A stretch of 64,000 nt of DNA from Basidiobolus meristosporus CBS 931.73 (lineage: Eukaryota; Fungi; Basidiobolomycota): positions 1 to 64,000 of the forward strand of contig MCFE01000423.1 of NCBI GenBank assembly GCA_002104905.1, written 5' to 3'. Numbering within the stretch: the stretch's first letter is position 1; each line of letters begins with the position of its first letter. The notes under the pieces are model-generated. The model saw nothing but the letters and a program-made list of their open reading frames with translations, was not told where the DNA came from and ran no database searches. The position numbers were made by a program, and so were the translations under genes. Shown one piece after another: positions 25,168-61,407 of this stretch.

Positions 25168-25526
25168 ATTAAAATTGATGGATGATTGTATAAAGGCGGT
25201 TTGAATTGATTCGGCGCAATCCGCCTTATTTATCTGATTTTTAACACATTATGGTTAAATCTCCATCAATTGCCACATATCCCATCATTATGTCGCAAAA
25301 ATCATCCGCAAACAATGCCTTGGTACTTTTATTGATGCTTTAATCATAGGTCTATAATCAAATAGGAAATCTGCGATTGATGTGATCTGATCCGTGTCAA
25401 CGCGATCCAAGATGCATCATGCATAATATATGGAAAATTCAACAATCACATTAGTTTTCATATATATTTCATATAAGACCAGGTTGATGCCAATATACTG
25501 CTGTATAAGTATCCAAATCCGTTGCT

Positions 25527-26759
25527 ATGGTCCCCATACCAAGCCTCAACTCATCTTTAGTACAACCCAGACAAAACCCATCCCCCAGCTCACAAGCGCG
25601 GTCCGGACCGGAAAAGTCAATGTCGGATCCGTTCGAGTTCTCGCCAAATGATTTTAGTATGGCCCAAGTGTCTATGATGAGCCTTCATACAGATATTTGG
25701 GCACTACTGATTAATCTAGCAGAACTAGATACCTCAGAGAGTCAACAAAGATGGAAGAATTTGAGTAGAAAGCTGTGGCATGAGTTCTACATCAAGATGC
25801 CAGCCAATGTATGTAAAAAGATATATAACCAGACAAGTATTGAAATCAAGAATGAGCTGAGAGTGAGGGGATTTGACAAAGAAGCCGCGCGGGAACAATT
25901 TTGCGCGCAATTTGCACAGTACGGGCCGGACGCGTCCGTTCGTGCCTCAACTTTGGGAACCAAAGAGATTTTGAATGAGTTTTTGCCTCAAATGACTAAT
26001 GTACTACGTGATATATTAGTAGAGCTAAGTGGCTTCCAAGAGCAATATACACAGGACTCATCCAGGCAACAGCTCCAAAGTATCAGACAGAGGGTAAGTG
26101 AATACCTTGAGGAATCAGATGGTGAGCTTCAGGAGGAAGAATACAGACCGCAGGCAACATCGTCCAGATCGCGCCAGCACGCCTTGCTGGATTCCCTACC
26201 ATCTCTTGCAACCACAGCGCGCCGGCGCACGTCAGTCCAGACCACGCCAACACCCTTTACCAGAATGCCCCGCGTCGAGTCAACGCGCGCGCTTCAGAGC
26301 AAAACTACGAGAACTCGCCAAACTGCTCATTTAGACACGAGTCCATTGGAGCGGACCGAGTCGCGTCAACATGCGGCATCCCATTGAACTCAGCCAAGGG
26401 CCATCTCAACGCGTCAAGGCACGCCTGTGCGTGCCGTTTCGCCCAACCATCAGCGAGTTACTTCTGGTGAACTGAGTGATGATGACCAACATGAAGTGCC
26501 TCAACCACCAGAGCCCTTGGCAAGTAAAAGAACGCGTCAGCGCGTGGCACTACAGGCCGGTTCAGTTAGTTCAGTCGGAGCGATTCAGCGCGGCCAAGCT
26601 GCAGCATTGCAGTCATCAACTAGGAGGCAAAATACTGACTACGAATACACAAGTAGCCAAGATGATAGTCAGCCTGGAAGTAGTATAGGTGTGCAAAGTG
26701 AGTCACTACCAAATGCTTCAGTAGTAATCCCTGTGAGAAAAAAACCCAGGAGAAGATGA
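25527..26759 (+). pseudogene. Transposon ORF2, copy 1 (SANT/MADF-like helix, disordered tail, C-terminal NLS), premature TGA at 26385-26387
   Basis: RWKNLSRKL helix motif, S/T/R/Q-rich tail, terminal PVRKKPRRR; collinear with 46579-47826. Confidence 0.85.
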
Positions 26760-27689
26760 TGCGATCGCTTTGAATCGCTCACATTTGTAATGATCCCGAC
26801 AACCCTTTTTTTTTGCGATCTGAATCAAGCCATCGCAAATCAGTGATCATCAAATTTTTGACATAAGTAATATCAAGGTCGTCTCACATTTGAGACAGAA
26901 CCCCTATAAATAAACACCCTGCATATATATACGTCATCTGTAATACCAGTGCAGCAATTGGATCTGTTCCGCACCTACACAATTGCTTGCGTGCTAGCTA
27001 TGACACCTAGCCCAATCACTAGGATCAGGGATTTACTTGCTCAATGGGCAAAATGGGATATTTGTTGGCGAATCAGGTAGCTTTTTTAGTAGTCAATGAG
27101 CCAATTGGGGGATGCCAGCTTCAGGATACTTTTGGACCAATTAACCACTGAGATACCGTCCGATTGGAGTGAGGGTAACCAAAATGGTAAGTATCAGTAT
27201 AGTTTATAGTGTGATACACATATATTTCCATTTACATTAAAGAAACATATCCAAATACCGGATTTTACCTGCCATTATAGCGGTATCCAATTGCGCACGT
27301 GATGCAAACATTACAAGTTGGCGCGATCATCTGTGCCAACCTCATTGTGTCAGATTGTGCCATAGTGTGCGAGATCGTCCCGCATAGTGCAAAATCGTCC
27401 AAGAGTGATCCTGTCTTCTGGTAGCCATAATATCGCGCCCGATCGTTCTTTGCAACCGCGGATCGTGCCGCGCACCCTGGCACGGTACGATGGAACAAGT
27501 CTAATATATAATGAGACAACACCTGTAGAAAAAATGCTCAGGATACTTTATAAGCCCCATAAAAATATCTTGGTCCTGCAGGTGGATCCAGTACAGATCA
27601 GCCATCAAGATCCATCATTAGGACATCCTAATGCATGCAGCTGGAATTATTGACCCTCTTTACAATTTTATGACAGGATTGTGTCAGTG

Positions 27690-28490
27690 TTTTGCTGATT
27701 TTACTAATAAATAGATAAATAAACTTGGTAATGTTTTGGCGGCCCTTTGACTGGAATCTAATGGTATTCTAAAGTTCTTATTGTGGCTAACACTTACTTG
27801 AACAGACCCAACCAGCCAGTACATCCAATTATTGTATAGAGAAAAAACTTGACAGTATTTTGATAGCCTTGATGCAGATATATGTTGGCATCTTAACAGC
27901 AATATGGCAGCCTACAGCTAGTCCTGTATGATGCCACTCTACCAATTTACCAAATGGTACTTCCTATAGCTACCTCCCTATACACCATTCATATATTCCA
28001 TTATAGAATCACCCCAATAAATGTGCTAACCAACCACTACTGTGGATAATCCACACATTGCTTAAATAAAAAAACTGTGTCTGCTGCTTGATAGCCTCAA
28101 AATAGATACCCACCTGCTGCAATTGACAGACCACAATCACCTCAGCAGTACAGCTTTTCAGTGTGATACTTGCAATGTTGCTTTATACCTTGTCTTGCTG
28201 GTAACTTATACATCCTGCAAACATATGATTGGTTGCAATCACCTTTGCCATGATTACCTCATCAATATCTGCAAAATACTTTTTGGAGTCTAGCCAATAT
28301 ATTCCATCTCCCTGCTAAGTTCTGCTTCCCCTAATAGGTATGCTCTAGCTCTTGTATGGATTAGTTTGGTACTGAATGGTGTGCAATTTGTCTTGCACCC
28401 AAGGGAAACATGGCTTACTTTAGTGAAATTGTCCAAATATGAATCAGTTGCTTGTTGCATCCAACCCATCTTTGCATTCCACAACTGATT
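27690..28490 (-). mobile_element. Decayed CACTA/EnSpm-like element fragment (3' part)
   Basis: Nucleotide similarity by eye to 32540-32700 and 43900-44430, which adjoin the recognisable Tnp2-like relics. Confidence 0.45.
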
Positions 28491-29149
28491 ACCAATGCAT
28501 TGAGGCTGCTTAGCTTCTTAATGCTGTACAAGTCCTTGAGATTTTGGAAGTGATTGGGAGAACAAGTAGATTATGTGGTGTTCACTCAATGATTTATCAA
28601 ATGCAAAATTAAGATATATATTTTTCATGATGTTGGCACAACATGCACATAGAATATAGACTTGTTATATTGTACCATGACATGGTGTGCAGCATGACTG
28701 GCAGTTGTTCAAAAGAATTTAGGGCAATGCTGAAGCTACCCGTAGGCAGGATTGCTCTTGGATGAATTTACACTATATGGGACAATCTTGCACACTATGG
28801 CACTATCTGACACAATGAGATTGGCACATAAAAGTGTGCCAAGTTGTGACGCTTGCATAACATGCACCACTGGAAACCACTATTATGGTAGGTACAATCT
28901 GGTATTTGGATATTTCTCTCTAATGTATAAGGAAGTAAATGCATACCACACAGAGAACTCTACTTATACTTGCCATTTTGGTTACCATCCTTCCAATTGG
29001 ACAGTATACCAGTGGTTGCTTGGTCCAAGAGTACTCAAAAGCTCTAAACCCCAACTTACTCATTGACAAATGCATAAGTTATCTCATTTGCCATCAGATA
29101 TCCCACTTTACCTATTGAGCAAGTTAATCCCTGCCTTTAGTAATTGGAC

Positions 29150-29496
29150 TGTTGTAGGAGTCTATGAGACACTGGATTCAATTGGGAGGTCAAGTAAATT
29201 GTGCGGTTTCACTTATTGATTTACTGAATGTAAAAGTAGCATCTATACTTTACATGGTCTTGGCATAAAAAGCATGTAGAATAGGTTAAGGAAGGTCATA
29301 AGAACATGTGGGCAAAGTTTGGTGCTGTTTGGACAACTTTGAGAACTTTCATGTTCTGGATACCTGATATTATGGTGAAAATATGTAAAGTAAATCCCAA
29401 CAAGGAATGTGGTCAGTATTCTCTAGGATTTGAAGGTAGTGATATAAGTGACTAAGTTAGGTGAGTATTTAGGTGGAATTACAAACTTTTGCAACA
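29150..29496 (-). mobile_element. Solo Copia LTR
   Basis: TG...CA termini, 5-bp TSD TGGAC (29145-49 and 29497-501), similar to the LTRs at 31818-32157 and ~42514-42860. Confidence 0.8.
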
Positions 29497-29986
29497 TGGA
29501 CAAGGTGTCATAGCTAGCACACAGCCAATTGGGTAGCTACAACACAGATAAAATAGCTGCACTGTGATAGGACTGGTGATGCAGAAGATGTATAGATATG
29601 CAGGGTTTTTATTTATAGGAGTTCTGTCTCTGATGTGCAACAACATTGATATTACTAATATCATGAGTTTAGTCAACATTAGTTAGCAATAGTTTTATTT
29701 GGATCACCACAAAAATGCATTTTTGGATCATGAAATATTGCAGCAGCTCAACACAATTACATTATCTTCTAGTTTTTTTCTCACAGGGACTACTACTGAA
29801 GTATCTGGTAGTGATTCATTTTGTGTACCTAAACTACTATCTTATTGACTATCAATTTGGCCACTGGTGTGCTTGTAGTCAGTTTCTTGCCTTATGGTTG
29901 ATAAATGCAGTCCTGTAGCTTGTCCATGCTGAATTGCTCCATATAATGCTACAGAACCAGCTTGAGTTGCCACACACTTACATATT

Positions 29987-30692
29987 AGACTTGTTCCATT
30001 GGACAGTGCCAAATAATGTCATAGTGTGCCAGAGTGTCCAAGTAGGCATATACTTGGCCACAGAGTGTGAAACATTGTTCTTCATGCAAAGCAGCACTGG
30101 TGCTTCACTCACTGAGCTAGAGAAAATCCATTTTTTGACCTTTTTTTGGGATCAATATAGTTCATGATGTGCCAAAACATAGAAAGATTGAAAATATGCA
30201 TCTGATACCCAAAACCCATGGCACTCTGAATCTAGCTCCAGAAATCTGTAACATGTCTCAAAAGAGCATGACACTGTCTGGGGCCACTGGTATTATATGG
30301 CACTATATTTAAGATTAGCACTAAAGTAAGACCATTACAAAGCACTAGTAGTGCTAGATAGTATCAGTAGACCAATATAGTGCCATGCATTCTTGTGACA
30401 TGTACAGACCTCTGGAGCTAGATTCAGAGTGCCATTGGTATTGAGTATCAAATGCTTATCTTCAGTCCCTCTGTGTTTGTGCACATCATGCACAATATTG
30501 ATCCCAAAAAAATGGTCAAACAATGAATTTTCTCCAGTACAGTGGGTGGAACACAGGAGCTGCATTGTATGAATACCTAGAACTATTTTTCACACTCTGT
30601 GACCAAGCACAGTTCTACTTTGCCTCTCTGGCAAGCTATGGCACTATTTGGCAGTCATTGCTCAACTTGGCACTATCATATGGAATAAGTCT
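29987..30692. mobile_element. Foldback MITE of the PHIS-like family (older copy)
   Basis: AGACTTGTTCC...GGAATAAGTCT ends, TSD ATT on both sides, arms are inverted repeats, homologous to 49719-50452. Confidence 0.9.
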
Positions 30693-31817
30693 ATTGCTTT
30701 ACTTGCCAAAGGCTCCTACTGTGGAGGTACTTCCAGTGGATTGTCATCAACCAGTTAGCCAGAAGTAACTTGCTGATGGTTGGGTGTAGCACCCCATGCA
30801 GGCACAAGCCAATGTGTTGGCATTGCCCTTAGCAGAGTGCAATGTGATGCTAGATGTTTGTGTAACTTAGCCTGCACCAGCAGACCTGTGTTGGCAAGTT
30901 CTGGTTGTATTTCTATTAGCCACTCATTAACTTGGTGTGTGGTGCTCCTGTGGAGGATGCTTGCATAGATTGAACTAACATGTGCCAGTATGCTGGTGTT
31001 GTAAGACTTTATAAGAGATACAGCAAGGTATGCTGATGCAGTCCTGATTCTGATGCCCATGGTCTGGATTCTACCTCTTCAAGCTCACCTTCTGATTCTT
31101 TGAAGTGCTTACTTGCCCTCTATCTAATACTTTGGAACTGTTGCCTTGATAGCTCATTTCTGTACAATCACTTACCAATATTGATATTACTTACTCATCT
31201 GAAAGGCCTTTTCTCACCAGTCCCAACAGTGCCACTGGATTTTCTTTTGACACATTAGAGGAGATCCATACCAAATATGGTGGGCCATCTACGCAATCTA
31301 CTCAAGGAGGACCCTTGTTGTGCTTCTCTGTTACTACAAGAACTACTGCCCTACAAGGTCTCATCCCACCACCACTGATTTGTTAGTCTTGCAAACTAAA
31401 TGAGAGTTATCTTGATCAGCAAACCCATCAGGCTGGCTCATATACACGTCCTCATCTAGTTGCCATTCAGAAGTTCAGTTTTTGTATCTATTTGTATATA
31501 GAGAGCTTATATTTGGGTTCAATAGCTGATATTAGTTTGATAGTATTAAACCTAGCTACCAGTACAAAGGTTTCAGTATAGTCCAGCTTCTTTGTTAGAA
31601 AGTATCCAATGGACACAGGCCTTGCTTTAGGCCCTTTAATTGTTTCACCAGCCTTGTGTGTTGACTTGAGGACCTCTTTACATCCAATTGTTTTTTGGTT
31701 GGTTGGTATTTGACCAAGTCCTAAGCTTGATTATTCATTAGGGCCTGATACTCCTCAGTCATTGCCGGTTGCCACACTTTGCTGAGAGTTATTTAGCACC
31801 TCTTTTACAGTCTGGAG

Positions 31818-32410
31818 TGTTGCAAAATTTCTAACACCACCTAAATATTCATCCTAGTCACTAGATTACTACCTACAAATCTTAAAGAATACCAACCAAA
31901 TCCTTTGCCAGGATTTACTAACAATATATTCACCAAAATATTATTTACCTAGATGGTGAAAATTCTCAAAGTTATCCAAACAGCCCCAAAGTTTACAAAC
32001 ATGATCTTTGGCCTGTCATGAGTCTATTATACATATTTGTAATGCAAGACCATCAAAAGTACAAGTAATTCTTTTACATTCAATAATCATTGAGTGAAAG
32101 CCACAAACCCTACTTGTAAGCCAACTCACTTCTAATATCTCCAAGACTCTTACTACAGGTCATGGGCTCCAGCTGTCACTTGTTGCAATGGCTACTACTG
32201 CCATCACTAAAATTTTTCCCTCTGCCAAAAAGTTGGTGAGATCTAACTACTAAGGGTGGGAGGTGAAGATGAAGATGCCGCAATAGGAAAGAGGCCTTTA
32301 GGCTATTCTCATGGGAGATGAATGCCGTCTTACAAGTGTAGAGGAGGAAGAATGCCCTCTTAAAAGCTTATAAGAGGAAGCCTTGGAGTACTAGAAGATA
32401 GAACAGAGTA
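31818..32410 (+). mobile_element. Copia LTR (31818-32157), PBS and decayed gag start
   Basis: tgttgc...tactaca, then GGTCATGGGCTCC; the following sequence is collinear with the gag at 21527 but has stops. Confidence 0.75.
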
Positions 32411-32689
32411 CCCTATGGGAAAAAATTTGGTCCCACTGGTGGATTCAACCCAGATCAGCCATGAGGATACTGCCAAGAAACCATCAAAATGCCAGCAGCT
32501 TGGAATTAGTGGCCCTCTACACATTCTTATGATGGGATTACAATGTCATTTTGCTGATTTTATTTGCTAAATAAAGTTAATAACTTGGTGGGGTTTTGGC
32601 AGCCTTTTGACAGGAGTTGCATGGCATTGTAATGGTCTTGATGAGCACTGCATCTATTTGAGTGGATCTGACTGGCCAGTACATCTAGT

Positions 32690-34550
32690 TGGCTACATGT
32701 CAAGAAGATAGGGGGTGCTTAGCTACTTAGTGCCATAAACATAGGTGTCTCCATGTGCATATCTGTCCCCAGTATCTTCCAACTCTTCCTGGCTGTCCTC
32801 AATGTGCCAACTTATTGCATCCATGACGGACTTGAAGGCAATATTCTTGATAGGATTGGAATATGGTAGTACCTGCAATTTGACTTGTCTTCCTATTTCC
32901 CTACATATCTGCTCTATAGGAAACCCCCAAAAGGTGAAGCAAGGCTCAATATTCTCCACACATCATGCAAGATGGTGTAGAGAATGAATACAGTAGCAGC
33001 GGAGATTCAGGAGTCCAGCTTTACATTTGTAGTATAGCTGCTTATATCCTGTCACAAACTCATTGTACAAAAGCTGTGATTGCATCATGTTGGCATTGGT
33101 GATCTGCTTCTGAGTAAATATCCCTAAGAAAAAAAATAAAGAAAAGGCCAGTAAAATACCGTCATAATATCAGCTGAGTTCCAAGTATTTTAATAGTGAC
33201 AACTCTCAATATCTTGGTTGTTAGCTCATGAGCAGGCAAGCAAACAAACTCTCCAGGAGGAGACTAGGCCAACTACTATTCATATCAAATTTGGTAATTA
33301 GCTGCCATTACTTCCAACTAAAATTGCATTTGAAATTTTGAGCCAAAAACACCAGCTGAATACCAGCAAAGTATCATTACAATATCAGCAGAATACCAGC
33401 TGGAAATTAGATGAATTCCAAGTTTGAGTTTTTTCATAGGGTATTCCCACAATGTTCTCATATGACTCTCAAGGCTTCCAATGTGCTCATGGTAGAAATG
33501 GCATCAAAAGTCCACTTATATAAATACCTTTCCAGTTAATCCAGTCCTTGCACTTGTATTGTCACATTTGCCTATAAATATTGATTAGAGCCTGTGAGAA
33601 GTACTTAGGGTAGCAGATACTCTGTAAAATCTTGCCAATTCTTCAAATATCTCCAGTATCTTGAAGGCCTCATTTAGATTGATATACCCTATGTACAACT
33701 TGGTCATTTGTATAGGGATATTGTTGAAAAGCAAATGCATTCCTCTAGGTGGCAAGCTTTTACTCCAGCAGATACCCTGTATCTTGAGTATCTCTGGTTT
33801 CCAACTATCTCCATGGTCTGGCCAATGGCTTATAGCTTGCCAACTTTGCCACAATTGCATGCTTACTGCTGTACAACTTCTCTGTGGGAAGATGATGCTC
33901 TTAGTGTTGCTGTTTGGATAATAATAATGTGTGTGAGTTATAGAGTACATTCCCTGGATCTCACACATTTGACAACAATGCTGTCCACTGTGTCCATAAA
34001 CGCTGTCTATCCTGCCAATGGCTGGGGTATTGGCAATGCAGATGGTGATATGCGCTTTGATATGATGTCCATTGACCAGTAGGCCAATTGAAACCATACA
34101 AAGTTTATCCAGCAAAGGATACAGGTAGTTATCCATGTTGGATAGTGATTTAGGCCCAGATACCAGTGAGACTACCTTCAGATATCTGCTTTTATGGCAT
34201 TAGATAGCAACAGATACAGGTTGATGAGAATCAGTGGCCAGCAGAATTTGCTGGTAGAGTGCTTGTTTGATGAGAATCCATCAAGTGCCAAGGCAAAGGT
34301 ATGGTCATACATACCTTCAAAGTGGCACTTGCTTCTAAGTTGTTAGTAAATTTTCCATCAAATATATTGGAGATACTTGCACTTAATTGATACTGAGCGC
34401 AGTATATTATAGCTTCACATTATTTGTTGAACTGCATAAGCTTCTTTAGACAGGGCATTACCTGATTAGATCCAGAGTGTGAACAATGTTTTCTCCCAGT
34501 TGTTGTGGATTACTGACAAGTTGGTCACCTTGCAATGGTGGCATTTTCTG
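32690..34550 (-). pseudogene. CACTA/EnSpm-like (Transposase_21/Tnp2 plus DUF4218-like) transposase relic
   Basis: DGFS...CWPLILINL...GPKS..MDNYLYPLLD, NTPA...GHSGQHCCQMCEIQG, FWGFPIEQIC..IGRQVK..VLPYSN motifs; many stops. Confidence 0.75.
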
Positions 34551-34556
34551 ATTTTC

Positions 34557-36780
34557 ATTCATGTTCTGTTAGATAGTGCCACATAGTGCCCAATCAATCT
34601 AGCATTATAACTTCTACCATAATGCCAGTGGTAGGATATAGTTACTGTTAATTTTATTTAATCTTACTTAAGTTGCTCAGGATAGTGTATTCCTTGCTTT
34701 ACTTCATCTGTGTAACACTCCAGACACATTTTGTTCAGTGAATGTCTTCTTGTATGTATACACTTTGCATTGGTAAGTATCCTTATTATTTTACCTGTTC
34801 TACTGTTTTCTCCTATATATGACATTCCTCTGTATTTACCAGCCAATACACTGAATCTCTTCAAGTATCCAAATGCATGCTCTACCCTCACTCTGAAATG
34901 ATAAACTATCTCATTGTAGAGCTTCTGCATCCTGCTAAGCACACAATTCCTTAGCTTCCTATAGGCTCTAATACATCCTAATCTCTGACAATCATCTCCT
35001 ATATGAGCTAAGTCTTCTACACATCTCTCCCCTCTACTGAATTCTGGATGATTTTCTACCCAGAGTGCTGTCATGCCTACTTCCAGCAAATGTCCCACTA
35101 AACCAGATGATGTTACCCTCAATGTCAGACAGTGCTAGATATTTCACACAGTGTGCCTTGTACTTGCCAGAATAAAAGTGCCTCTGCCCTCTAAAAGGTC
35201 TGTTAATCCAGACTGGGAAGGTATCCAAAATACTCTTTATATGGAACCTGTTGTTGAACACTCTGTGATATGGGAGTGCATTTGAGCTTCTGAACCTAGT
35301 ATTCCAAGCTTGCTCTAAGTTATTCATACCCTCTGCAAGGTGGCTCTCCATTGCTGTCAGCTAGGAATGAAAGCTTCTATTTCTTTTATTGCCATGGATA
35401 GGGGATGAAACCTTGTGGGGCAATAGTTCTTGTAATAGCAGAGAAGCTTAACAAGGGAACTACTTGAGTAATTGGGGTAGAAGTTCTGCAGTACATGGTA
35501 TAGATCTCCTCTAATGTGTCAAATGATAATCCAGTGGTAATGATGAGATTAATGAGAAAAGACCTTTCTGGTGACTAAGTCATATTAAAATTGGTAGGTG
35601 ATGGGTCTGAGGCGTATTGATTCAATTTGGTGCAATCTACTTTATATATCTGATATCCATGCATTACAATTAAATCTCCATCAATTGCCATGTATGCCAT
35701 CATTAAGTTGCAAAAATCATCCTGAAACAATGACTTAGTACTTTTGTTGATGCATTACTCACAAGTTTATATTCAAATAGGAAATCTGCAATTGGTGGGA
35801 TCCAATCCATGTCATTGCAATCCAATATGCATCATGCCTAATATATGGAAAACTCTACAAGCACATTGGTTTTCATATATATTTCATGTAAACCAGGTTG
35901 ATACCAATACACTATGGTATAAGTATCCAAATCCATCACTATGGTCCCTATACCAAGTCTCAACTCATCTTTAGTACAACCAAGACAAAACCCATCACTC
36001 AGCTCACAAGCATGGTCCAGACCAGTAAAGTCAATGTTAGATCAATTTGAGCTCTTACCAAATGATTTACATATGGCTCAAGTGTCTATGATGAGCCTTC
36101 TTACAGATATTTGGGCATTACTCATTAATCTAGCAGAGCTAGATACCTCAGAAAGTCAACAGATATGGATGAACCTGAGTAGAAAGCTGTGGCATGAGTT
36201 CTACATCAAGATGCCAGTGGATGCCTGTAAGAAGATATATAACAAGACACATATTGAAATCAAGAATGAGCTGAGAGTGAGGGGATCTGATGAGGAAGCC
36301 AAGCAGGAATCATTTTGCACGCAATTTGCACAGTATGGGCTGGTCACATCTGTTTGTGCCTCAACTTTAGGAATCAAAGAGGTTTTGAATGAGTTTTGGC
36401 CTCAAATGGCTAATGTATTACAAGATTTATTAATAGAGTTAAGTGGCTTCCAAGAGCAATATACACAGGACTGATCCAGGCAACAGTTCCAAAGTATCAG
36501 ACAGTGGGCAAGTGAATACCTTAAGGAATCATAAGGTGAGCTTAAAGAGGAGGAATACAGACCGCAAGCAACAGCATCTAGATTATGCCAGCACTCTTTG
36601 CTGGATTCCTTACCATCCCTTGCAACTTCAGCATGCCGGTGCATGTCAGTCTAAACTACACCAAAACCCTTCACAAGAATGTCCACATTGATTCAATGTG
36701 TGTTGGGTCAATGCATGTGCTTCAGAGCAAAATCACCAGAACTTGCTACACGCTCATTTAGACACAAGTCCATCTGGAAC
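34557..36780. mobile_element. Decayed PHIS-like element, copy 3 (left end, transposase and ORF2 5' part; right part missing)
   Basis: Degenerate left TIR, frameshifted transposase (ORFs 34664-35122 and 35034-35351), ORF2 at 35941-36474 and beyond. Almost all CpG lost relative to copies 1 and 2. Confidence 0.9.
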
Positions 36781-38349
36781 TCAAGGCCAGGCAAAATTCA
36801 CTTGACTTAGCCATGAGCATTATCCTGGACCCAAGCAAGCAGAAAGGTTTTGGTTCAGCATTGGTATGCCAAATGTGTATCTCAAGAGTGGCATAAACTA
36901 TCAAAGGCAGAAGAATAAGGGTGCAATGGCTAATAACCCGCAGCTTCCTGATGAGCCTGCTACAAGACAGGCCAAAAGCTCTAAGCAAGCAACAAAGACA
37001 CTTCAGGTAGCTGGAAGAGTGCCAGTTAGGGACAGGCAGGCAAGCACAGATGCATCAGCACAAAATTCATCAAGAAAAAAGAGTAGTTCCAATTTAGAGG
37101 CACTCAGTCAAAGTATCAGTGAAAGACATGGCAGCAAGAAATACCAGTGATTACCAGAGGAGCCTATCACAACTAGGTCTGAGTACTCAAAATAACCAGA
37201 AAAGTAACATCAGGCTGATAGGGAGTGCTAGTAAGGGGCAAGCAGGCTAGAATAGATGCTTCAGAGTAGCATTTATCAAGGAGAAAACATGGTTTGATAC
37301 CAGAAGCACTCAGAAAAAGTGGCATTAATGACCTGACAGTGATAAAGGAATAGATTGGGGGGAAAGTCTACACAAGCCCAAGAGAGGGAAGCGTGAGAAT
37401 AAAGCTGCAATGCCTTCTAATTAACTCAGTAAGCCTGGAACAGACTGAATACCATCACAGCCAAGATGTATTACCAACATGAAAGCAGCTGTTCTCACAA
37501 GAGTTGGAGGTGCAGCCAGTAGTGCTGCACTTTGGTGATGTAGATGAGCTTGCAGAGACAGGAAATTTGTGTGCCACAGCCTTTGCATCCTCCATTGCTG
37601 ACAGAGTGGAGATCGCACTGACAAACAAAGCAACATTCTCAAGAGCTCAAAGGACTATCACAATGCCTTCAGTAGAATTTTGGAATGGTAATAGACATAC
37701 CAAGTGGTTGCCGCACTACTTTAAGAGCAGTGCTCAAGAAAATGCACTTGAATATTGCAAGGACTAGTTGCAAAGGCTGGCAGATGAGGTGCTAGACCTT
37801 GCAGTGCTTGCTAAAGACAAGGACATATGGGAATTGGTGATGGAGTTGTAGCATAAAGCTGTTGGGTTCTTGCCAATGTAATGGAAACAAATTGTTACTG
37901 TTGAAAATCTTATTCAGTGGTGAATGCTAATGGAGTTAGTGATTGAGTGTGGGGCTGGGCTTAATGCTAGTGTAGGGTATAGGGAGTTGAATAGGTCAAT
38001 ACAATTGGAAATTGTGGTAAAACAGAAGTTTCAATGGAAATAGATAAGTTTGTTTGCATGAAAAGTAAGAGCAATGGTAGAGTCAGGAAGTAAGAAGTGT
38101 GAAAGAGAGGCAAGAGCCAATCAACACTCACAAACAATGGAAGTGATAGAATGTCAAGGATCAGAAAGTGAGAAAATTGAGAGAACCAATATAAAGCCAC
38201 ATATGTGGGGTTGTGATTAAGAATTTTGACTAAGTTTCTTATGAAATTTGGGATGCATTTATTTTTTGACAGTCCTTGCAAATTGTCCTGACAGGAATAG
38301 TACCTCTTAGTCACGGGATTTAAGTCTGTGATAGCCTTTTGACAAGATT

Positions 38350-41300
38350 ATCATAGTAATCTCTCACAGGGTAGTGCCTGTTACCACATTTGCCTCAATG
38401 CTAAGGACATATTGCAATTCAATGATCAAGCACAAAAACAGCAAAGAGTGCTTTGAAAGCATTAGAAGACATATACTACCAATGCTTAGCTGCTAAGAAA
38501 ATGCTCTTGGACAAAAATTCTTTACAAGAAAGATGCTATCAGGAGAGGAAATGAAAAATCCAATCAACACAGTTACCTATTGGTTGATGAGATGGAATCT
38601 GTGGGTGTATCAACTACTGATAAAGATGTGCAAGTTACTATTCTGAGCAGCCCAACAGACTAGCTTTGGGGTCTAGTACCAGCCCTAGAGTCCAGAGCTG
38701 AAGATCTGAGCCCAAGTTGCATGTATGGAACACTTGTGGATGAAAAATTTAGAAAAACAAATGCCATTAAGAAGGAAGCTGATATTACATAGGTTAACAT
38801 TTTGCTTTGGACCTCCTGTAAAAGGACAGAATACCCATCAGACTGGTGCCTCAAAAAGAATGATGATCAGTAAAAGAAGCCAGAATATGCAAATGATGCA
38901 ACCACTGAAGAGTGATTATTCATATCTGCAATAAATATTACCACAGATAACAACTCTTAGACCTGGTATACTGACTTTGGTGCATTTCAATACTTACAGA
39001 CCAAAAAGAAAATCTTCCCCTATATTAAGATATTCCAATTAAGAACAGTAATAGATGCCACACACCTTCCTTCTAAGCAGTAATGCTTGTACCAGAGACA
39101 TCCAAGAACCTACTATTAGTAAGCAAGGCCGCAGCAGCAGGACTCAGTGTCAGTTTTGACAATTGCAGATACAAGATCACTGATCAAAGTGGTGCATGTA
39201 TTGCTTTTGGTATCAGGGATCCAAATTTATACAGGTTGACTTATATTCCAAGATATTTGGAGGCCAACATAAGTAGCTTAAAAGAAAAAAGGGCAATATT
39301 TTGGCACCAAAGATTTAGACATATGAACTTTGATTATTGGTGCAAAATGATCAAGGATCAGCCAATTTCCAGAGTAAAAATTGCTTACCTAGCTAATTTG
39401 AGGCACTGTGAAGCTTGCATACATGCAATACAAGCCAGGCAATGGCTTAAGAGCTCTGGGCTAAAGAAAACTAAGAAAAAAATATGTCTAATTCATCAGA
39501 TCTGCATGGACATATACAAAATTGTTTCCTATGTGGGATGAAGAATTTATTCACTTTCATTGATGCTTATGCAAAATACATATAGGCCTGCTTCATAGAA
39601 AAATGGAGGAAGCTCTGTCAAGGTTGAGGGATTTTGAAGCCAAGGTATGGAGTTAAACTGGTGAGAAAATCAAGAAAACACACTCCAACAATGGTGAAGA
39701 GTATACCTCAAGACTCTTTATCTACTTGGGCAAAATTCATGAGATAAAGCAAGAGACTACTGTAGCACATTTTCAACACCAAGATGAAGTGGCAGAAAAT
39801 ACAAACACATCAATAATTGGATGGCAAAATCTATGATCCATGGTCAAAATTATCCTATGATATCTGGGTAGAACCAGATGCTGTGGCTGTGTAGCTAAGA
39901 AATAGGAGCTATAGCTGTATACTTCATTGCTCTGCTTTACTTGAGTCATAGTACAGATACAGATTATGTACCAAATATCTACAAATATATGGGTGAACAG
40001 CATAAGCCAATAACTGCCTGGAAACTAGTCAAAGTTTGAGATAAATCATAGCAGAAGAATATTTATAAATTATAAACTTAACAATACCAAGGCAAAGAAG
40101 TTGATCAAGACTACCAATGTGTTGTTATATGCAAATTTCTAATTTTACAACAAATGACACCATATTAGGATAAAAATCTGATCTCAAGTCCACTGATAGT
40201 CAGGGCTGAGTCAGAATAAAACAGTAAGAACTTTTCAATTGAGATGCCTCAACAACAATGGTTCAGCCTGAATCTGTGCCCAGAAATATCCCAGAGGTGA
40301 TCATTGCAGCACTAAACAATATATTATCTAAATGGACCACAAATGGATCAAATAAATATATCAAATAGGGCAGAAACTTAGCCTACGACTATTCAGTCCA
40401 TATTTTACAAGCCCTAAAGTGTAAAAGGGGCCATCAATAGCCCTCAGGCAATGTTTTGAAGATCTGCAATAATGGAGGAGTATCTGGCCTGGAGGGATAT
40501 CAGACTTGGGACCTAGGCAACTTACTAATCAACCAAAGATCATTGGATGCAGATGGGGGTTCATGAAATGATATATGGCTCATGGTATAACAGAGAGATA
40601 TAACACAGGACTTGTTGTAAAAGGATAGTTTAAAAGAAAAGGACTTGACTTTAACTGAGACCTTTGCACTGGTAGCCAAGCTTAATTTCATCAGAATAAT
40701 GTGAGCCATAGCTATCATGATAACATGGCAACCATGAACACCCATGCCAAGTTTCAGCTTCCTAGCTCAATTTCTAAGAGATTCCTTCTGGAACCTTCTA
40801 CCACCTTCCAGAAAGTTCCCAACCATTCCAAAACCATTGTTACTCAATGGAACATTCCATGGAAGCTTCCCATTGTATTTTTCATAGTCCAGTACCATTT
40901 ATAGAAATACCAGGTCACATGACTTAGTCACATGATCAGGTGACCCAATCCATTTGCCCATCCTGTCTCAGTGCCTGCCTTCTATATTATTATCCCCAGC
41001 ACTGCTGCTGTGCCTCACCCCACAACCCCATTAGTATTAGCTAATATCTCTTGGCGTCAGTATAACCAAAAAGTATATAGTCCTATCCCCCCTTAAGTAT
41101 TCCTCAGTCTGATAAACACAGGTCTTGAATAAACAGCCTTGCCTTGGAAATCTGCCTTGACTTGTTGATCCACACCTAAGTTCTTTCCCGGTCCTGCCTT
41201 GCCTAGCCCTACTCTCCTGCCTTGTGTCTATTCACCACAATAGCTGTCAAATGTAGGCTTCTATTCATCAAGCTGATGTAAAGACTGCATCTTGAATGAA

Positions 41301-42860
41301 AAACTTAATGAGCACATGCTCATGGGCCAGCCTAACGGGCTTTCTTAACAAGATAACCCCCATTAGGTCTGCAATCTTAAAAAGTCTCTTTATAGTATGA
41401 AATAATTTCCACAAGGCTAGAATTGCAAGATAGATTCTTATTTTGATTAATTAGGTTTCCAAAGAGAAGTGCTGACTGAAGTATCTCCTATAAGCCAGCC
41501 AGGCAAGTCCAGTCTTATTAGCTCCTTATGTAAATCTCATTAGAGTCACCAACAACCAAGAAGCTGTGGAAGAGACTAAATCCTACATATCTAAAGAACC
41601 CAGGATGTCCAACCTGGGAGAACTCATTTACTGTTTAGGCATAAACTCCTTATGAACAGAAGTACAAAGACTATGACTGTATGGCTGTCAAAGTATACTC
41701 AAGATATACTAAAGAAGTATCAAGTGGAAGACTGTACACCAGCAGCTACCCCAATGTAAATAAATCTTGACTTATTGAGAGCTCAACCCAATAAAGAGAG
41801 CCTGATGCTATGAAAAAGCCCTGTCTTTTCCTACAAATCTATGGTCAGCAGTCTGATGCATATCATGCTTGAAACACAACCCAATACTGCATAGTCAGTG
41901 GGAGCTGTCAGTCAATAAATTCAGAACTATAGATCAGATCATATTGCAGTAGTGAAGCAGTTTTTTTGAAAACCTAATTAGAGCTACTAATATCAGCTTA
42001 GGGTGCCCCTGTAAGAAAATAGAGCAGGATATTACAGGATAATTCTATGCAGATTGGGAACAAAGCTTAGATAATAGAGCATCTACTACTTCATACACCT
42101 TTTTTTACTGTAAAGGAGCATTTCATCAAAATTCAAGACAGCAACCAGCTGTAACACTTTCCACCACAGTTGCAAAGTAAATGACAGCCTGTGAAGCTAC
42201 AAAAGAAGCAGCATGGCTAAGGCAGCTTTTCATATACTTGGACTATGTCAAAAATACATTTGTTACTTTATATCAAGATATTCAAGGATGCATAAAATTA
42301 AGTAGAAATCCAACTTCTCATGCTAGAGCTGAGCACATGTATTATGACAATGTTTCACACAAGAAACTATCAATAATAGTATAAATAGCTTAATTTACTG
42401 TCTTACAGAAGGAATGATTGTAAACATATTACCAAACTATCAGCTAGAGACAGATTTGAATATCTTAGGTCTAAGTTAGGGCCATTCAGTATGAGCATTT
42501 ATTCAAGAGGGGGTGTTCTATGATTTGTTACTCTACCAAAATATTCACCTAGGTTGGTCACTTAGATCATTACCTACAAATCTTAAAGAATACTGACCAA
42601 ACTTCTTGCCAGGATATGCTTGGAATATTTTCACCTTTATGTCAGATACCCAGAACTTGAAAATTCTCAAAGTAGTCCAAACTGCCCAGGCCTGAACACA
42701 TGCTCTTGGGACCATCCTTGTTCTATTCTACATGTTTGTTATACAATGACCATGTCAAGTAAATACTACTTTTACATTTGGCAAACTGTCAAGTAAAGAC
42801 TCCATAATCTACTGATTCTCCCAATCACTTCTAGTAATTCCAAGACTCTTAGAGCTGCTT
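38350..42860 (+). mobile_element. Decayed Ty1/Copia element (gag, GAG-pre-integrase, integrase, RT, RNase H, PPT, 3' LTR) with internal insertions
   Basis: gag relic 38380-38900; FWHQRFRHMNF and CEACI at 39083-39541; ETFALVAKLNFIRI at ~40650; TACEATKEAAWLRQL at 42181; PPT aagaggggg followed by an LTR starting tgttct at 42514. Confidence 0.85.
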
Positions 42861-42879
42861 TCCTCTGCATAGTGTCTAT

Positions 42880-43450
42880 ATTTATTGGCACTGCTTCCAA
42901 TTATCTTCTTTGATGGTGATTAAGTGCTTTCCGGTTAGTTACTGTAGGCCTCTTAGCTCCAACTATTGCCTGTTAATTATCAATTGCAAGCTTGATGGCT
43001 TCTTCAATAGTCTGGGGTCTTTGAAAGTTCACTTCCTTATAAGTTCTTTCCTTCACCCATCTGTAAGGTATTCAACTTGATTAAGGGGGTCCATTCTTAA
43101 AATCTGCCCTAGTAAACATCTATACTCCCAGAAATATGCTTAAACCATTCCTTTCTGTCTGAGTGTCTTCAGCCTCCACCTCAGTAGTGTCTGCTGGTGT
43201 GAAGGTTCAAAAGCATCCTGAATTCTCAGCACAAACTCATCCCTGGTAGCAATAGTTGAGCATCCCATCATATGGGCTGACCTGATCCTGTTGGGGGTAC
43301 CACTATAGGACTGGATCCACCAAAATAGATGATGGTTTATGCAGCTTACTTGCTAGGGTAACTCCTTCAGTCCAGGTGCTTGAAAAGCTTTCCTAGCCAC
43401 ATTTCTTCTTCTGTGGCTTCACAGGCTGCCTTATAATGCGCCTATATGGT
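42880..43450 (-). mobile_element. Ty3/Gypsy gag fragment related to family A
   Basis: Reverse complement contains ccagactattgaagaagccatcaagcttgcaattga, matching 52600-52640. Confidence 0.6.
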
Positions 43451-43699
43451 AGAGAGTGCTACCATTGATTGCTTTCCTGAATTTTATGTATTTTCTCCTT
43501 TACTGTCCCTATGAGAATTAATTTGATCCACAGGTGGATCCAATCTGGATCTGCTGTCAGGATCATGTAATGAGTCCATCATAATGCTAGCAGCTTGGAT
43601 TGTTAACCCTGTTTACAATGTTATGATAGGGGTGTGATGGTGTTTAGATGGCTCTTAATTGGATTTCAATGGTATCTTGAAGATTATATTGCAACCTAC

Positions 43700-45148
43700 A
43701 CTTTTTTGAGTAGGCCTATTCAACCAGTGCATGCAAATGCCATATATGAAGTAAGCCTAACATTATTTCAACTGCCTTGATGCAGACATTTGATGGCATT
43801 ATAAAGACAGTGTGGTGGCCTCCTGCTAGCACCATATAATGGTACCTTACCAGTTTACCAAAAATAATATATTCCCTTTTGCCACATCCCCTTGTACCAT
43901 TCATAAATACCATTGTAGAATAACTCCAATTTATTTATTTATCCATTACTACCACTGATAGTCCATATAGAGTCTGAATCAAAGTAAACTATGGCCCACT
44001 ACTTACTCACCTTTAAACACATGCATACATGCTGTATTTGCCACTCATGTATCATGTCAACCTTGCAGCATTGTAGTGTGATATTTGCAAAGTTATCTTA
44101 TACCTTATATTAATGATGGCAAATACATCCTGCAAACATATGCCCAGTTACCACTACTTTTGTTATATATACCTCTTGGATATCTGCAATATACTTCTTG
44201 GTACTTGACCAGTATTATCCTTTTCCCTGCTGGATTCTAGTCCTCTGTATATGTATGCTCTGGTTCTGTTTGTATGAGTTTCAAACTGAATGGCGTAAAA
44301 ATCAGCTGGTAACAAGGGGAAACCTAGCATATACTGGTAAATGTATTATAATAGAACTGGTATCATATTGCTTCTACACTTCTTTAAATTATGTAACTGA
44401 ATATCCATGCATTGGGGCCACTTAGCTTCTTAATTCCAAGGCATAGGTGTCTCCATGTGCACAGCAATTCTCTGTACTCTCCAACTCTTACTGGATGACA
44501 TTCTTATGCCAGCTCATCACACCCCTGACAGATGTGAGGGTGATATTCTTAATGAGATTTGTATATGGTTATACTTGCAACTTGAATTGCCGTCTTATTT
44601 CCCCTTACATCTGCACTATAGCAAAATCTCCAAAGGTGAAGCAAGGTTAAACATTTTCCCCATGCCAGGCAAGATGGAGCAGAGAACAGATATAATAGCA
44701 GCAAAGATTCACCTGTACAGCTCTGTGCTTAAAATTTAACCACTGATATTCCAACACAAACTTCTTGCATTGAAGCTGAAGATGGATCAAGTGGGCATTG
44801 GTGATCTACTTCTGGATAAGGATTACTACATTGCAAACATGTGACTTCCATTGCTTCCAATGCACTCTGGGTAAAACCTTCTCAAAGGCCACTTCAATAA
44901 ATATATATCCAGTCCATCCATTTCTTGCATTTGTATTGTAGCATATGTGCGCTAATATTCATTGTAGCTTGTGACAAGAACTTTGGGTAACATAAACTCT
45001 ATAATGATATGCAATTCTCTCAAGTTTCTCCAGTATCTTAACAGACTCAATTAGCACAAAGTGCCCCATATACAAATTGACAATTACTATTGGGGTATTA
45101 CTAAAGAGCAAATGCACTGCTTCCAGTGAGACGCTTTTGCTCCTACAT
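43700..45148 (-). pseudogene. CACTA/EnSpm-like relic, 3' part (split by PHIS copy 2)
   Basis: Collinear with 32700-33740. The sequence on the two sides of PHIS copy 2 joins up into the homologue of 33740-33790. Confidence 0.7.
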
Positions 45149-45334
45149 ATTAGACTTGTTCCGTTGGATAGTGCCACATAGTGCCAGCCTGTTTATAGTG
45201 CCAGATCAATCTGGCACTCTACGGCACCATCTGGCACTATAATTTCTACCATGATGCCAGTGGTATGATACAGTTACTGGTAATTTTACTCAATCTTACT
45301 TATGTTGCTCAGAATAGTGCTTTCCTTGCTTTAT

Positions 45335-46219
45335 TTACTCTTCATAATGCTCCAGACACATTTCTCTCAGTGGATGTCTTCTTGTATGAACATACTGTGC
45401 ATTAATAAGTATCTTAACTATTTTACCTATCCTGCTGTTTTCACCTATATATGACTTTCCTCTGTATTTACCTGCCAATATGCTGAATCTCTTCAGATAT
45501 CCAAATGTGTGCTCTACCCTCACTCTGAAATGATTAAATATCTCATTGTAGAGCTTCTGCTTCCTGCTAAGCACACCATTCCTTGGCTTCCTATAAGCTG
45601 TAATACATCCTAATCTCTGACAATCCTCTCCTATATAGGCTAAGTCTGCCATACATTTCTCCCCTCTACTGAATTCAGGATGATTCTCTACCCAGAGTGC
45701 TTTGTCATGCCTACTTCCAGCAAATGGCCCACTAAACCAGATGATGTTGCCCTCAATGTCAGACAGTGCTTGAAACTTCACACAGTGTGCCTTGTACTTG
45801 CCAGAATAAAAGTGCCTCTGCCCTCTAGAAGGTCTGTTAATCCTCACTGGGAAGGTATCCAAAATACTCCTGATATGGAACCTGTTGCTGAACACTCTGG
45901 GATATGGAAGTCTATTGGAGCTTCTGAACCTAGTATTCCAAGCTTGCTCTAAGTCATTCATACCCTCTGCAAGGTGGTTCTCCATTGCTGTCAGCTGGGA
46001 ATGAAAGCTTCTAGGACTTTTGTTGCCATGGATGGTGGGATGAAACCTTGTAGGGCAATAGTTCTTGTAATAGCAGAGAAGCTTAACAAGGGATCTCCTT
46101 GAGTAGATTGGGGTTGATGGTCCACAGTACTTGGTATAGGTCTCCTCCAGTGTGTCAAAAGGAAATCCAGTGGTAGTGATGGGATTGATGAGAAAAGACC
46201 ACTCAGATGAGTAAGACAT
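45335..46219 (-). CDS. Intact DDE_Tnp_4-type (IS5/ISL2-like) transposase, 294 aa from ATG 46219
   Basis: LDTFPVRINRP...YSGKYKAHCVKFQALSD, GSRHD, ADLAYIG, YNEIFNHFRVRVEHTFGYLKRFSIL: full DDE triad, intronless, no stops. Confidence 0.93.
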   Translation of the reverse strand: MSYSSEWSFLINPITTTGFPFDTLEETYTKYCGPSTPIYSRRSLVKLLCYYKNYCPTRFHPTIHGNKSPRSFHSQLTAMENHLAEGMNDLEQAWNTRFRSSNRLPYPRVFSNRFHIRSILDTFPVRINRPSRGQRHFYSGKYKAHCVKFQALSDIEGNIIWFSGPFAGSRHDKALWVENHPEFSRGEKCMADLAYIGEDCQRLGCITAYRKPRNGVLSRKQKLYNEIFNHFRVRVEHTFGYLKRFSILAGKYRGKSYIGENSRIGKIVKILINAQYVHTRRHPLREMCLEHYEE

Positions 46220-46578
46220 ATTAAAATTGATGGATGATTGTATAAAGGCGGTTTGAATCAATTCGGCGCGATCCGCCTTATTTATCTGATTTTTAACACA
46301 TTATGGTTAAATCTCCATCAATTGCCACATATCCCATCATTATGTCGCAAAAATCATCCGCAAACAATGCCTTGGTACTTTTATTGATGCTTTAATCATA
46401 GGTCTATAATCAAATAGGAAATCTGCGATTGATGTGATCTGATCCGTGTCAACGCGATCCGAGATGCATCATGCATAATATATGGAAAATTCAACAATCA
46501 CATTAGTTTTCATATATATTTCATATAAGACCAGGTTGATGCCAATATACTGCTGTATAAGTATCCAAATCCGTTGCT

Positions 46579-47826
46579 ATGGTCCCCATACCAAGCCTCA
46601 ACTCATCTTTAGTACAACCCAGACAAAACCCATCCCCCAGCTCACAAGCGCGGTCCAGACCGGAAAAGTCGATGTCAGATCTGTTTGAGTTCTCGCCAAA
46701 TGATTTTAGTATGGCCCAAGTGTCTATGATGAGCCTTCATACAGATATTTGGGCACTACTGATTAATCTAGCAGAACTAGATACCTCAGAGAGTTGACAA
46801 AGATGGAAGAACTTGAGTAGAAAGCTGTGGCATGAGTTCTACATCAAGATGCCAGCCGATGTATGTAAAAAGATATATAACAAGACAAGTATTGAAATCA
46901 AGAATGAGCTGAGAGTGAGGGGATTCGACAAAGAAGCCACGCGGGAACAATTTTGCGCGCAATTTGCACAGTACGGGCCGGACGCGTCCGTTCGTGCCTC
47001 AACTTTGGGAACCAAAGAGATTTTGAATGAGTTTTTGCCTCAAATGACTAATGTACTACATGATATATTAGTAGAGCTAAGTGGCTTCCAAGAGCAATAT
47101 ACACAGGACTCATCCAGGCAACAGCTCCAAAGTATCAGACAGAGGGTAAGTGAATACCTTGAGGAATCAGATGGTGAGCTTCAGGAGGAAGAATACAGAC
47201 CGCGGGCAACATTGTCCAGATCGCGCCAGCACGCCTTGCTGGATTCCCTACCATCTCTTGCAACCACAGCGCGCCGGCGCACGTCAGTCCAGACCACGCC
47301 AACACCCTTTACCAGAACGCCCCACGTCGAGTCAACGCGCGTTGGGTCAACGCGCGCGCTTCAGAGCAAAACTACGAGAACTCGCCAAACTGCTCATTTA
47401 GACACGAGTCCATTGGAGCGGACCAAGTTGCGTCAACATGCGGCATCCCATCAAACTCAGCCAAGGGCCATCTCAACGCGTCAAGGCGCGCCTGTGCGTG
47501 CCGTTTCGCCCGACCATCAGCGAGTTACTTCTGGTGAACTGACTGATGATGACCAACATGAAGTGCCTCAACCACCAGAGCCCTTGGCAAGTAAAAGAAC
47601 GCGTCAGCGCGTGGCACTACAGGCCGGTTCAGTTAGTTCAGTCGGAGCAATTCAGCGCGGCCAAGCTGCAGCATCGCAGTCATCAACTAGGAGGCAAAAT
47701 ACTGACTACGAATACACAAGTAGCCAAGATGATAGTCAGCCTGGAAGTAGTATAGGTGTGCAAAGTGAGTCACTACCAAATGCTTCAGTAGTAATCCCTG
47801 TGAGAAAAAAACCCAGGAGAAGATGA
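46579..47826 (+). pseudogene. Transposon ORF2, copy 2, premature TGA at 46795-46797
   Basis: In-frame join of ORFs 46579-46797 and 46813-47826; otherwise open to PVRKKPRRR*. Confidence 0.88.
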
Positions 47827-48571
47827 TGCGATTGCTTTGAATCGCTCACATTTGTAATGATCCCGACAACCCTTTTTTTTGCGATCCAAATCGAGCCATC
47901 GCAAATCAGTGATCATCAAATTTTTGATATAAGTAATATCAAGGTCGTCTCACATTTGAGACAGAACCCCTATAAATAAACACCCTGCATATATATACGT
48001 CATCTGTAATACCAGTGCAGCAATTGGATCTGTTCCGCACCTACACGATTGCTTGCGTGCTAGCTATGACACCTAGCCCAATCACTAGGATCAGGGATTT
48101 ACTTGCTCAATGGGCAAAATGGGATATTTGTTGGCGAATCAGGTAGCTTTTTTAGTAGTCAATGAGCCAATTGGGGGATGCCAGCTTCAGGATACTTTTG
48201 GACCAATTAACCACTGAGATACCGTCCAATTGGAGTGAGGGTAACCAAAATGGTAAGTATCAGTATAGTTTATAGTGTGATACACATTTATTTCCATTTA
48301 CATTAAAGAAACATATCCAAATACCGGATTTTACCTGCCATTATAGCGGTATCCGATTGCGCACATGATGCAAACATTACGAGTTGGCGCGATCATCCGT
48401 GCCAACCTCATCATGTCAGATTGTGCCATAGTGTGCGAGATCGTCCCACATAGTGCGAAATCGTCCAAGAACGATCCTGTCTTCTGGTAGCCATAATATC
48501 GCGCCCGATTGTTCTTTGCGACGGCGGATCGCGCCGCGCGCCCTGGCACGGTACAATGGAACAAGTCTATT

Positions 48572-51363: not shown

Positions 51364-51598
51364 TATGTAGCAGTAATAACCAGAAACCTTACTCCTAAAG
51401 AAAGTAGAAGCCTCCCTCAAGATGCTCAAAAACCAAGAATGGAAGAATGTTATGCAGCAAATCCTGGCCCAGCGGCAACAGTGACTCAGATCCTTAGCCA
51501 GCAGCAACAAGGAATGACTGCCATGGGGCAAAGCTAGCAAAACCCTGTCAAGAGCAACTTTAGTGTGCAGGTCAACTGGTACCATGGTAGAGTCAATG

Positions 51599-61384: not shown

Positions 61385-61407
61385 TACCTCACTTGTGCTT
61401 ATTTCCA

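Follow-up and report, generated by a model that had tools for sequence, protein, structure and literature searches.

The stretch of DNA considered here, 64,000 nucleotides from the fungus Basidiobolus meristosporus CBS 931.73 (hereafter the window; its coordinates are those of the record MCFE01000423.1, assembly GCA_002104905.1), raises a simple question: by what process have its transposable elements (TEs), above all the PIF/Harbinger and Gypsy elements listed below, come to lose their CpG dinucleotides when the adjacent host genes have kept theirs? A preliminary description of the same DNA had pointed to CpG-targeted C-to-T mutation of repeats and had proposed that, in an early-diverging fungus, this could be an undescribed genome-defence system. 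The organism is such a fungus (Zoopagomycota/Basidiobolomycota) and not a member of the Pucciniomycotina. We find that the C-to-T change is specific to CpG, is confined to TEs and falls preferentially on the individual CpG cytosines that follow a T. Its best explanation is probably CG methylation restricted to TEs, followed by a TpCpG-biased decay of 5-methylcytosine (5mC) to thymine. The elements that carry the evidence are the following.

24099-27503, plus strand: young PIF/Harbinger element, copy 1, with terminal inverted repeats (TIRs) at 24099-24124 and 27478-27503
24099-25190: transposase part of copy 1, gene on the minus strand, nearly without CpG; a private TAA at 25008-25006 interrupts its open reading frame (ORF)
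25191-27503: part B of copy 1, CpG-rich, carrying ORF2 (25527-26387), which ends in a TGA derived from TCGA at 26385
34597-36778, plus strand: old Harbinger element of the same family, copy 3, with 10-11% non-CpG divergence from the young copies
45151-48569, plus strand: young PIF/Harbinger element, copy 2, the sister of copy 1, its ORF2 interrupted at 46795, where a TCGA site has given rise to a TGA
45335-46261, minus strand: intact 308-aa DDE_Tnp_4 ORF of copy 2, containing no CpG
53686-55027, plus strand: left part of an old Gypsy element (long terminal repeat, LTR, and gag), CpG erased, with CAA at ~54254; interrupted where the young Gypsy inserted
55041-61811, minus strand: young Gypsy element, with LTRs at 55041-55426 and 61426-61811, reverse transcriptase and integrase ORFs, and an in-frame gag TGA at 61231-61229
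61812-64000, plus strand: continuation of the old Gypsy, CpG erased, with 82-85% identity to the pol of the young copy

CpG-specific change between copies

The two young Harbinger copies are 97.8% identical across 3.4 kb and are bounded by 26-nt TIRs. The minus strand of the Harbinger copies carries the gene for a DDE_Tnp_4 (PIF/Harbinger) transposase, and the plus strand carries ORF2. A segmental duplication is rejected for the young pair, since the flanks are unrelated and the ends are marked by the TIRs. Both copies have a T at the position of 26675, where A makes up 99.5% of the family read depth in the unitigs described below; because they are true sisters, the differences between them arose after a recent common ancestor. 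The preliminary description had correctly recognized a two-copy repeat, but this begins at 24099 and 45151, outside the start it had given. Nor is the element CpG-rich throughout, as had been implied: its first ~1.1 kb, the transposase part, is nearly without CpG in both copies.

From the alignment of copy 1 with copy 2 we reconstructed 135 ancestral CpG dyads, which now read (copy 1/copy 2) CG/CG in 92 cases, CG/CA in 26, CG/TG in 12 and TG/CA in five. The change is thus a C-to-T transition on either strand, and the early impression that nearly all differences between the copies are CG versus TG/CA proves to be well founded: there are 48 substitutions at the 270 CpG positions of these dyads against 11 at 3131 other sites (Fisher odds ratio 61, p=3e-44). 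Put differently, 81% of the young-copy substitutions are at CpG, and non-CpG transitions number only six in the 3131 sites. The transposase part (1092 bp) has five non-CpG differences and one at CpG, and the CpG-rich part (2328 bp) has six non-CpG differences and 42 altered CpG dyads; divergence therefore follows CpG content rather than position. Per lineage, the rate at non-CpG sites is 0.00176 and that at all CpG cytosines is 0.093, or 53 times higher (30-106, the Poisson range of the 11 non-CpG events). The LTRs of the young Gypsy, which were identical at insertion, repeat the pattern in an unrelated family: 3 of their 5 CpGs now differ, against 2 of the 375 remaining sites.

Some of these changes have consequences for the encoded proteins. 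Codon 73 of ORF2 is CAA in copy 1 (25743) and TGA in copy 2 (46795), and codon 287 is TGA in copy 1 (26385) and CAA in copy 2 (47452), just as first described; both sites were TCGA in the ancestor. A similar pair is found in the Gypsy gag: where the old copy has TGG-CAA-TGG (~54254), the minus-strand sequence of the young copy is TGG-TGA-TGG, its TGA (61231-61229) sharing the frame of the ORF at 60665-61216, again in agreement with the preliminary reading.

The young copies still hold 82% of their CpGs. The old copies retain less than 7%: the old Harbinger at 34597-36778 has kept 4 of 60, with 46 now TG or CA and four TA, and for the old Harbinger and Gypsy copies together the 132 dyads include 59 TG, 53 CA and five TA. 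The complete conversion of an older copy that had been reported near 36690 is borne out by a CpG-rich 29-mer at 47331 of copy 2, every CpG of which is TG or CA in the old copy at ~36693.

The strands of the hits are randomly interleaved. Runs tests give 14 runs against 13.0 expected in copy 1 (z 0.43) and 11 against 10.7 in copy 2 (z 0.13). An overall strand asymmetry was considered and dismissed, the 31 minus-strand and 17 plus-strand hits not differing significantly (about p=0.06).

The bias toward TpCpG acts on single cytosines

When each cytosine of each ancestral dyad was counted in each lineage of the young Harbinger copies, a strong dependence on the preceding base emerged. After a T, 30 of 132 CpG cytosines have been converted (22.7%); after any other base the figure is 17 of 398 (4.3%; odds ratio 6.6, p=3e-9). 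Expressed as rates per lineage, the TCG cytosines change at 0.258 (147 times the non-CpG rate) and the other CpG cytosines at 0.044 (25 times). The same preference is found inside the dyad. Among young-copy dyads with a single TCG cytosine, it was the TCG cytosine that changed in 20 cases and its partner in three (p=5e-4). For the old copies the equivalent test asks which strand changed first, and gives 25:4 (p=1e-4; Harbinger 9:0, Gypsy 16:4), for a total of 45:7 in young and old copies; the six CpGs that survive in the old-copy test all lie in dyads lacking a T context. Methylation of the dyad as a whole does not suffice to explain the within-dyad bias.

The composition of the window carries the same imprint. 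TCG is the commonest NCG context in the host block, and CpG cytosines in T context account for 32-34% of the total there, in genes and intergenic DNA alike, for 17-20% in the young TEs and for 6% in the old ones. The T context also bears on the dyads mutated in both sister copies: three of the five are TCGA, including both of the ORF2 pairs of stop codon and CAA, and this prevalence of TCGA accounts for the apparent excess of double hits.

The G that follows is indispensable. In the young copies TC without a following G (TCA, TCC, TCT) is unaffected, with none of the six non-CpG transitions in a TC context, so that TCH conversion is below about 0.15% versus 22.7% at TCG; CCG is hardly raised (6.5%). 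Two candidate sources of the bias, UV damage at T-5mC dipyrimidines and an APOBEC-like TC-specific deaminase indifferent to the next base, are rejected on these grounds, CCG being barely elevated and TCH not converted. An additional CpA-to-TpA component was also considered and set aside, being inseparable from the CA that derives from CpG; the old copies do show an apparent excess at NCA, but it is confounded by this CA.

Evidence from the whole Harbinger family

Unitigs from two whole-genome runs of the source sample were matched to copy 1, giving ~22,000 Harbinger pieces, of which ~6,000 have at least 99% identity. Across the family, C>T (107) and G>A (94) make up most of the variant places, with 38 A>G, 25 T>C and ~40 for all transversions together. 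At six TCG cytosines that copy 1 has kept, the mutated form makes up 78-97% of the family unitig depth, against 12-45% at four non-T CpG cytosines; these site shares come from 40 of the 557 variant rows, chosen for support in all four runs and thus a biased sample. The summed word depth is 3-8x10^5, versus 50-220 for single diverged pieces, which suggests, roughly, a family of about a thousand copies.

A second sample under the same species label yielded ~60 Harbinger pieces, none of them at 99% identity or above. A recent burst of Harbinger transposition specific to the strain or lineage is suggested.

CpG loss is confined to the transposon island

The window is divided into two compartments, a host gene block (1-20868) and, filling the rest from 20869 on, a transposon island. 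The observed/expected ratio (o/e) of CpG stays at 0.7-1.0 in all 1-kb bins of the first; in the bins of the island it is 0.00-0.11, the three young elements excepted. Taken by compartment, the host gene spans have a CpG o/e of 0.86 and the intergenic DNA of the host one of 0.75, both being compartments that we read as unmethylated, versus 0.05 in the old TE island; part B of the young Harbinger has 0.92 and the young Gypsy 0.60. The border between host and island is sharp: CpGs follow one another at intervals of ~20 bases as far as 20868, after which none occurs before 22158, and all of the CpG-erased DNA in the window is TE-derived. The host genes do, then, retain their CpG as had been noticed at the outset. 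Unique non-coding DNA is not CpG-depleted, given the intergenic o/e of 0.75, and the possibility raised in the preliminary description, that CpG loss might be equal in unique non-coding DNA and in repeats, is contradicted by the old TEs at 0.05.

Methylation decay and its alternatives

These observations can be brought together in the following scheme. The transposons would be CG-methylated and the host genes and intergenic DNA would not. The methylation would be maintained by DNMT1-UHRF1 and likely established by Dim2-like enzymes. Methylated cytosines would then become thymines singly and on either strand, each copy drifting from CG to TG/CA until CpG is nearly gone. The conversion would depend on context, a TpCpG cytosine being lost ~6 times faster than other CpG cytosines, those of the same dyad included. 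We infer 5mC as the substrate, and likewise the identity of the enzymes that deposit it. For methylation speak the strict requirement for G at +1, the 25-fold elevation of the non-T CpGs as well, and the restriction to TEs with its sharp border. The enzymatic repertoire, for which we rely on a published table, is also compatible: Funabiki et al. (PMC10538959) give for B. meristosporus, in their source data, a DNMT1 (ORX99839), a UHRF1 (ORX90637) and two Dim2-like proteins (ORX98566 and ORX84408), in addition to DNMT2, HELLS and a CDCA7-like protein, and record DNMT3, DNMT4 (RID) and DNMT5 as not detected. Moreover, repeat-restricted 5mC has been reported in other early-diverging fungi, Linderina and Phycomyces (PMC11258239).

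Plain deamination of 5mC accounts for all of the features except the TCG bias. In duplex DNA at 37 C, 5mC deaminates in vitro at a rate of the order of 1e-5 per year. By our own rough estimate from this figure, unrepaired chemical deamination would exceed the observed speed, so the rate requires no special mutator. The source of the bias must be the conversion step (deamination catalysed by a DNMT or another enzyme), strand-specific methylation, T:G repair, or replication opposite 5mC; its presence within single dyads narrows the cause to the conversion/repair step or strand-specific methylation.

Several points weigh against decay of methylated CpG as we propose it. Plain chemical deamination under symmetric maintenance methylation gives no reason to expect that the two cytosines of a dyad should differ six-fold. 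In mammals the 5mC-deamination signature is weakest, not strongest, at TCG. Mammalian CpG transitions are, moreover, only ~10-20 times faster than other changes, a range that the ~53-fold excess found here (30-106) surpasses. The argument that known methylation patterns do not account for the TpCpG bias has been made before (Horns et al. 2012, PMC3318451). In the literature that we searched, which did not extend to Bewick 2019 and Mondo 2017, no 5mC measurement for B. meristosporus was found, and the 5mC column for this species is blank in PMC10538959. Finally, every quantitative result derives from a single 64-kb window and two TE families, apart from the unitig shares, which cover 10 sites.

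The within-dyad bias leaves some room for a more active process. One could imagine an enzyme-driven, TE-targeted mutator that turns methylated TpCpG into TpTpG one cytosine at a time, a RID-independent counterpart to repeat-induced point mutation (RIP) that would be the same process as that in the Pucciniomycotina; we consider this a tentative proposal with perhaps a minor chance of being correct. Were it true, either the process would be of ancient origin in fungi or it would have evolved on two occasions, and it would be accessible in an easily cultured, homothallic early-diverging fungus. A related suggestion, which we think unlikely, is a homology-triggered analogue of RIP, in which duplicates are recognized, possibly in the zygospore ahead of meiosis, and TpCpG is deaminated enzymatically in both copies, independently of RID and either shared or convergent with the Pucciniomycotina. 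All of the mutated DNA in the window is repetitive, the bias on single cytosines suggests an enzymatic step, and the five double-hit TG/CA dyads exceed the ~2 expected under a uniform model, an excess that lies in TCGA sites. The same trinucleotide has, besides, been called RIP-like in the Pucciniomycotina (PMC3318451). Yet the hits form no strand-polarized runs, RID/DNMT4 is not listed for the species (PMC10538959), and the non-TCG CpGs decay at ~25 times the background, as general methylation predicts; it is also hard to square an efficient repeat-induced process with a family of about a thousand copies that retains members with 82% of their CpGs, in a fungus that readily forms zygospores.

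Two further readings dispense with methylation or with mutation in place. A cytosine deaminase directed to TEs or heterochromatin, acting on unmethylated DNA with an intrinsic TCG specificity and no 5mC, would have a preference for T at -1 that resembles the TC-preferring AID/APOBEC-type deaminases; it seems highly improbable to us in view of the contrast between TCH and TCG, the hypermutation of non-T CpGs too and the DNMT1-UHRF1 maintenance machinery listed for the species. It is scarcely credible that there was no mutation in place at all and that the CpG differences reflect polymorphism of master elements, selection on the elements or errors of assembly. The family is admittedly very large and heterogeneous, so that some differences could predate both insertions, but the sister copies share a variant present in about 0.5% of the family, and the two LTRs of a single insertion give the same pattern. 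Selection did not shape the changes, since they create stop codons, and assembly error sits poorly with independent short-read unitigs that vary at the same positions. In addition, old copies of two unrelated families converge on total loss of CpG with the same first-hit bias.

Relation to known systems

TpCpG-centred hypermutation of TEs, RIP-like in character, was reportedly described in the Pucciniomycotina by Hood in 2005. The likeness that the preliminary description saw to the CpG/TpCpG pattern of some basidiomycetes is real (Horns et al. 2012, PMC3318451). In Microbotryum, Puccinia, Melampsora and Rhodotorula, as here, C-to-T change in TEs is centred on TpCpG, other CpGs are moderately raised, TCH is not and there is no RID (PMC3318451); single-copy genes keep TCG in both cases while repeats lose it. 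The TpCpG excess is present in the Pucciniomycotina and absent in the Agaricomycotina and Ustilago (PMC3318451), and Amselem et al. (2015, PMC4352252) have tied the basidiomycete CpG signature to 5mC deamination and an enzyme of the Masc2/DNMT1 type, which is a candidate here as well. What differs is the host, a zoopagomycete far outside the Dikarya, and the resolution: the bias is seen within dyads (45:7) and the rate ratios are quantified.

Depletion of CpG in methylated TEs, familiar from vertebrates, plants, the Agaricomycotina and Tuber, likewise produces CpG transitions on both strands of silenced repeats and spares the genes, and DNMT1-UHRF1 is present there as it is listed here. In contrast, the B. 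meristosporus window has a strong single-cytosine bias for T at -1, an o/e as low as 0.05, a border sharp within a few hundred bases and a rate excess of ~53-fold, which is higher than the usual mammalian figure. Neurospora-type RIP, which is RID-dependent and premeiotic, shares the irreversible C-to-T change in repeats and the stop codons in transposon genes; here, however, the target is CpG/TpCpG and not CpA, there are no strand-polarized runs, RID/DNMT4 is unlisted and young high-copy elements are only lightly mutated. In the study of Dim2 in Zymoseptoria tritici, the methylation context was reportedly not restricted to CpG. Dim2-dependent C-to-T change in the repeats of this fungus has been described (PMC8016269), a cytosine methyltransferase raising repeat mutation outside classical RIP; Dim2-like genes are listed for Basidiobolus too.

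Our literature searches turned up no account of TEs hypermutated at TpCpG or CpG in Basidiobolus or any other member of the Zoopagomycota, and none of the TpCpG signature outside the Basidiomycota. The RIP analysis in a paper on entomophthoralean genomes was confined to the composite RIP index of ascomycetes (PMC11105155), and a 2025 kingdom-wide survey of RIP does not mention CpG (PMC12543289). The present finding carries the Pucciniomycotina-type signature over to an early-diverging fungus and contributes evidence from single dyads; it is not a new kind of system or of defence. The CpG-targeted, TE-confined C-to-T change of the preliminary description therefore stands, and what had been overlooked is the TCG bias of single cytosines. 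The proposal of an undescribed genome-defence system went too far: decay of CpG to TpG in methylated TEs is already known, and DNMT1, UHRF1 and Dim2-like proteins are listed and RID is not. Nor is a special repeat-specific mutator needed for the rate, unrepaired 5mC deamination being faster by our rough estimate. The strands of the hits show no polarity of the RIP type.

The signature now reaches beyond the Dikarya. TpCpG hypermutation has awaited a mechanism since 2005. Among the hosts known so far are obligate plant pathogens that are hard to handle (rusts, anther smuts); the same signature is now found in a culturable zoopagomycete. The finding explains how the TE islands of this 89-Mb genome lose CpG, and the CpG-rich young Harbinger and Gypsy copies are natural reporters with which the process could be measured.

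The two halves of the Harbinger element

The finding also explains why an intact, CpG-free transposase gene lies beside a CpG-rich partner gene inactivated at TCGA codons. The transposase part of the young copies has five CpGs in 2184 bp (o/e 0.05) and the ORF2 part an o/e of 0.92. ORF2 is inactivated at TCGA codons in both young copies and the transposase ORF of copy 2 is intact; a gene without CpG is immune to a mutational process that acts on CpG. The scarcity of CpG in the transposase part is older than the split from copy 3: only five TG/CA double mismatches are seen there, compared with a total of more than 60 CpG sites for part B. The break in the copy 1 transposase is a private non-CpG change, a T at 25006 (TAA, minus strand) where A makes up 99.7% of the family read depth.

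Many of the family unitigs leave copy 1 just past 25177/25188 (25177-25190), at the junction of the CpG-free and CpG-rich parts, and there may be Harbinger sub-families that share just one of the two halves. A CpG-rich tandem unit of 15 bp is present twice in copy 2 (47331-47345) and in the old copy 3 and once in copy 1 (26278), implying a deletion in copy 1. With respect to homologs, a Pfam search found no domain in ORF2, an exact-protein look-up found no record of the Harbinger transposase, and a word-index protein search returned two distant Logan matches for the transposase and none for ORF2.

Other features of the window

The young Gypsy is inserted in inverted orientation within an older copy of its own family, and its LTRs are 98.2% identical. 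A search of the window against Rfam gave no match. The remaining features are these.

1-20868: host gene block, encoding a catalase (long), a fungal TRP-like channel, a RING/WD40 protein, Rpc4, NDUS4, PAC3, an RNase H2 subunit, 3-HAO and others
5505-6695: 396-aa host ORF, 100% identical to the hypothetical protein K493DRAFT_357708 of B. meristosporus CBS 931.73
20869-24098: first part of the CpG-erased TE island, with a Copia-type gag at 21452-22174

The Copia-type gag, starting at 21452, adjoins the CpG border at 20868. Further into the CpG-erased island there is a tandem duplication of ~607 bp (50992-51598 and 51595-52201), the two units being 85% identical.

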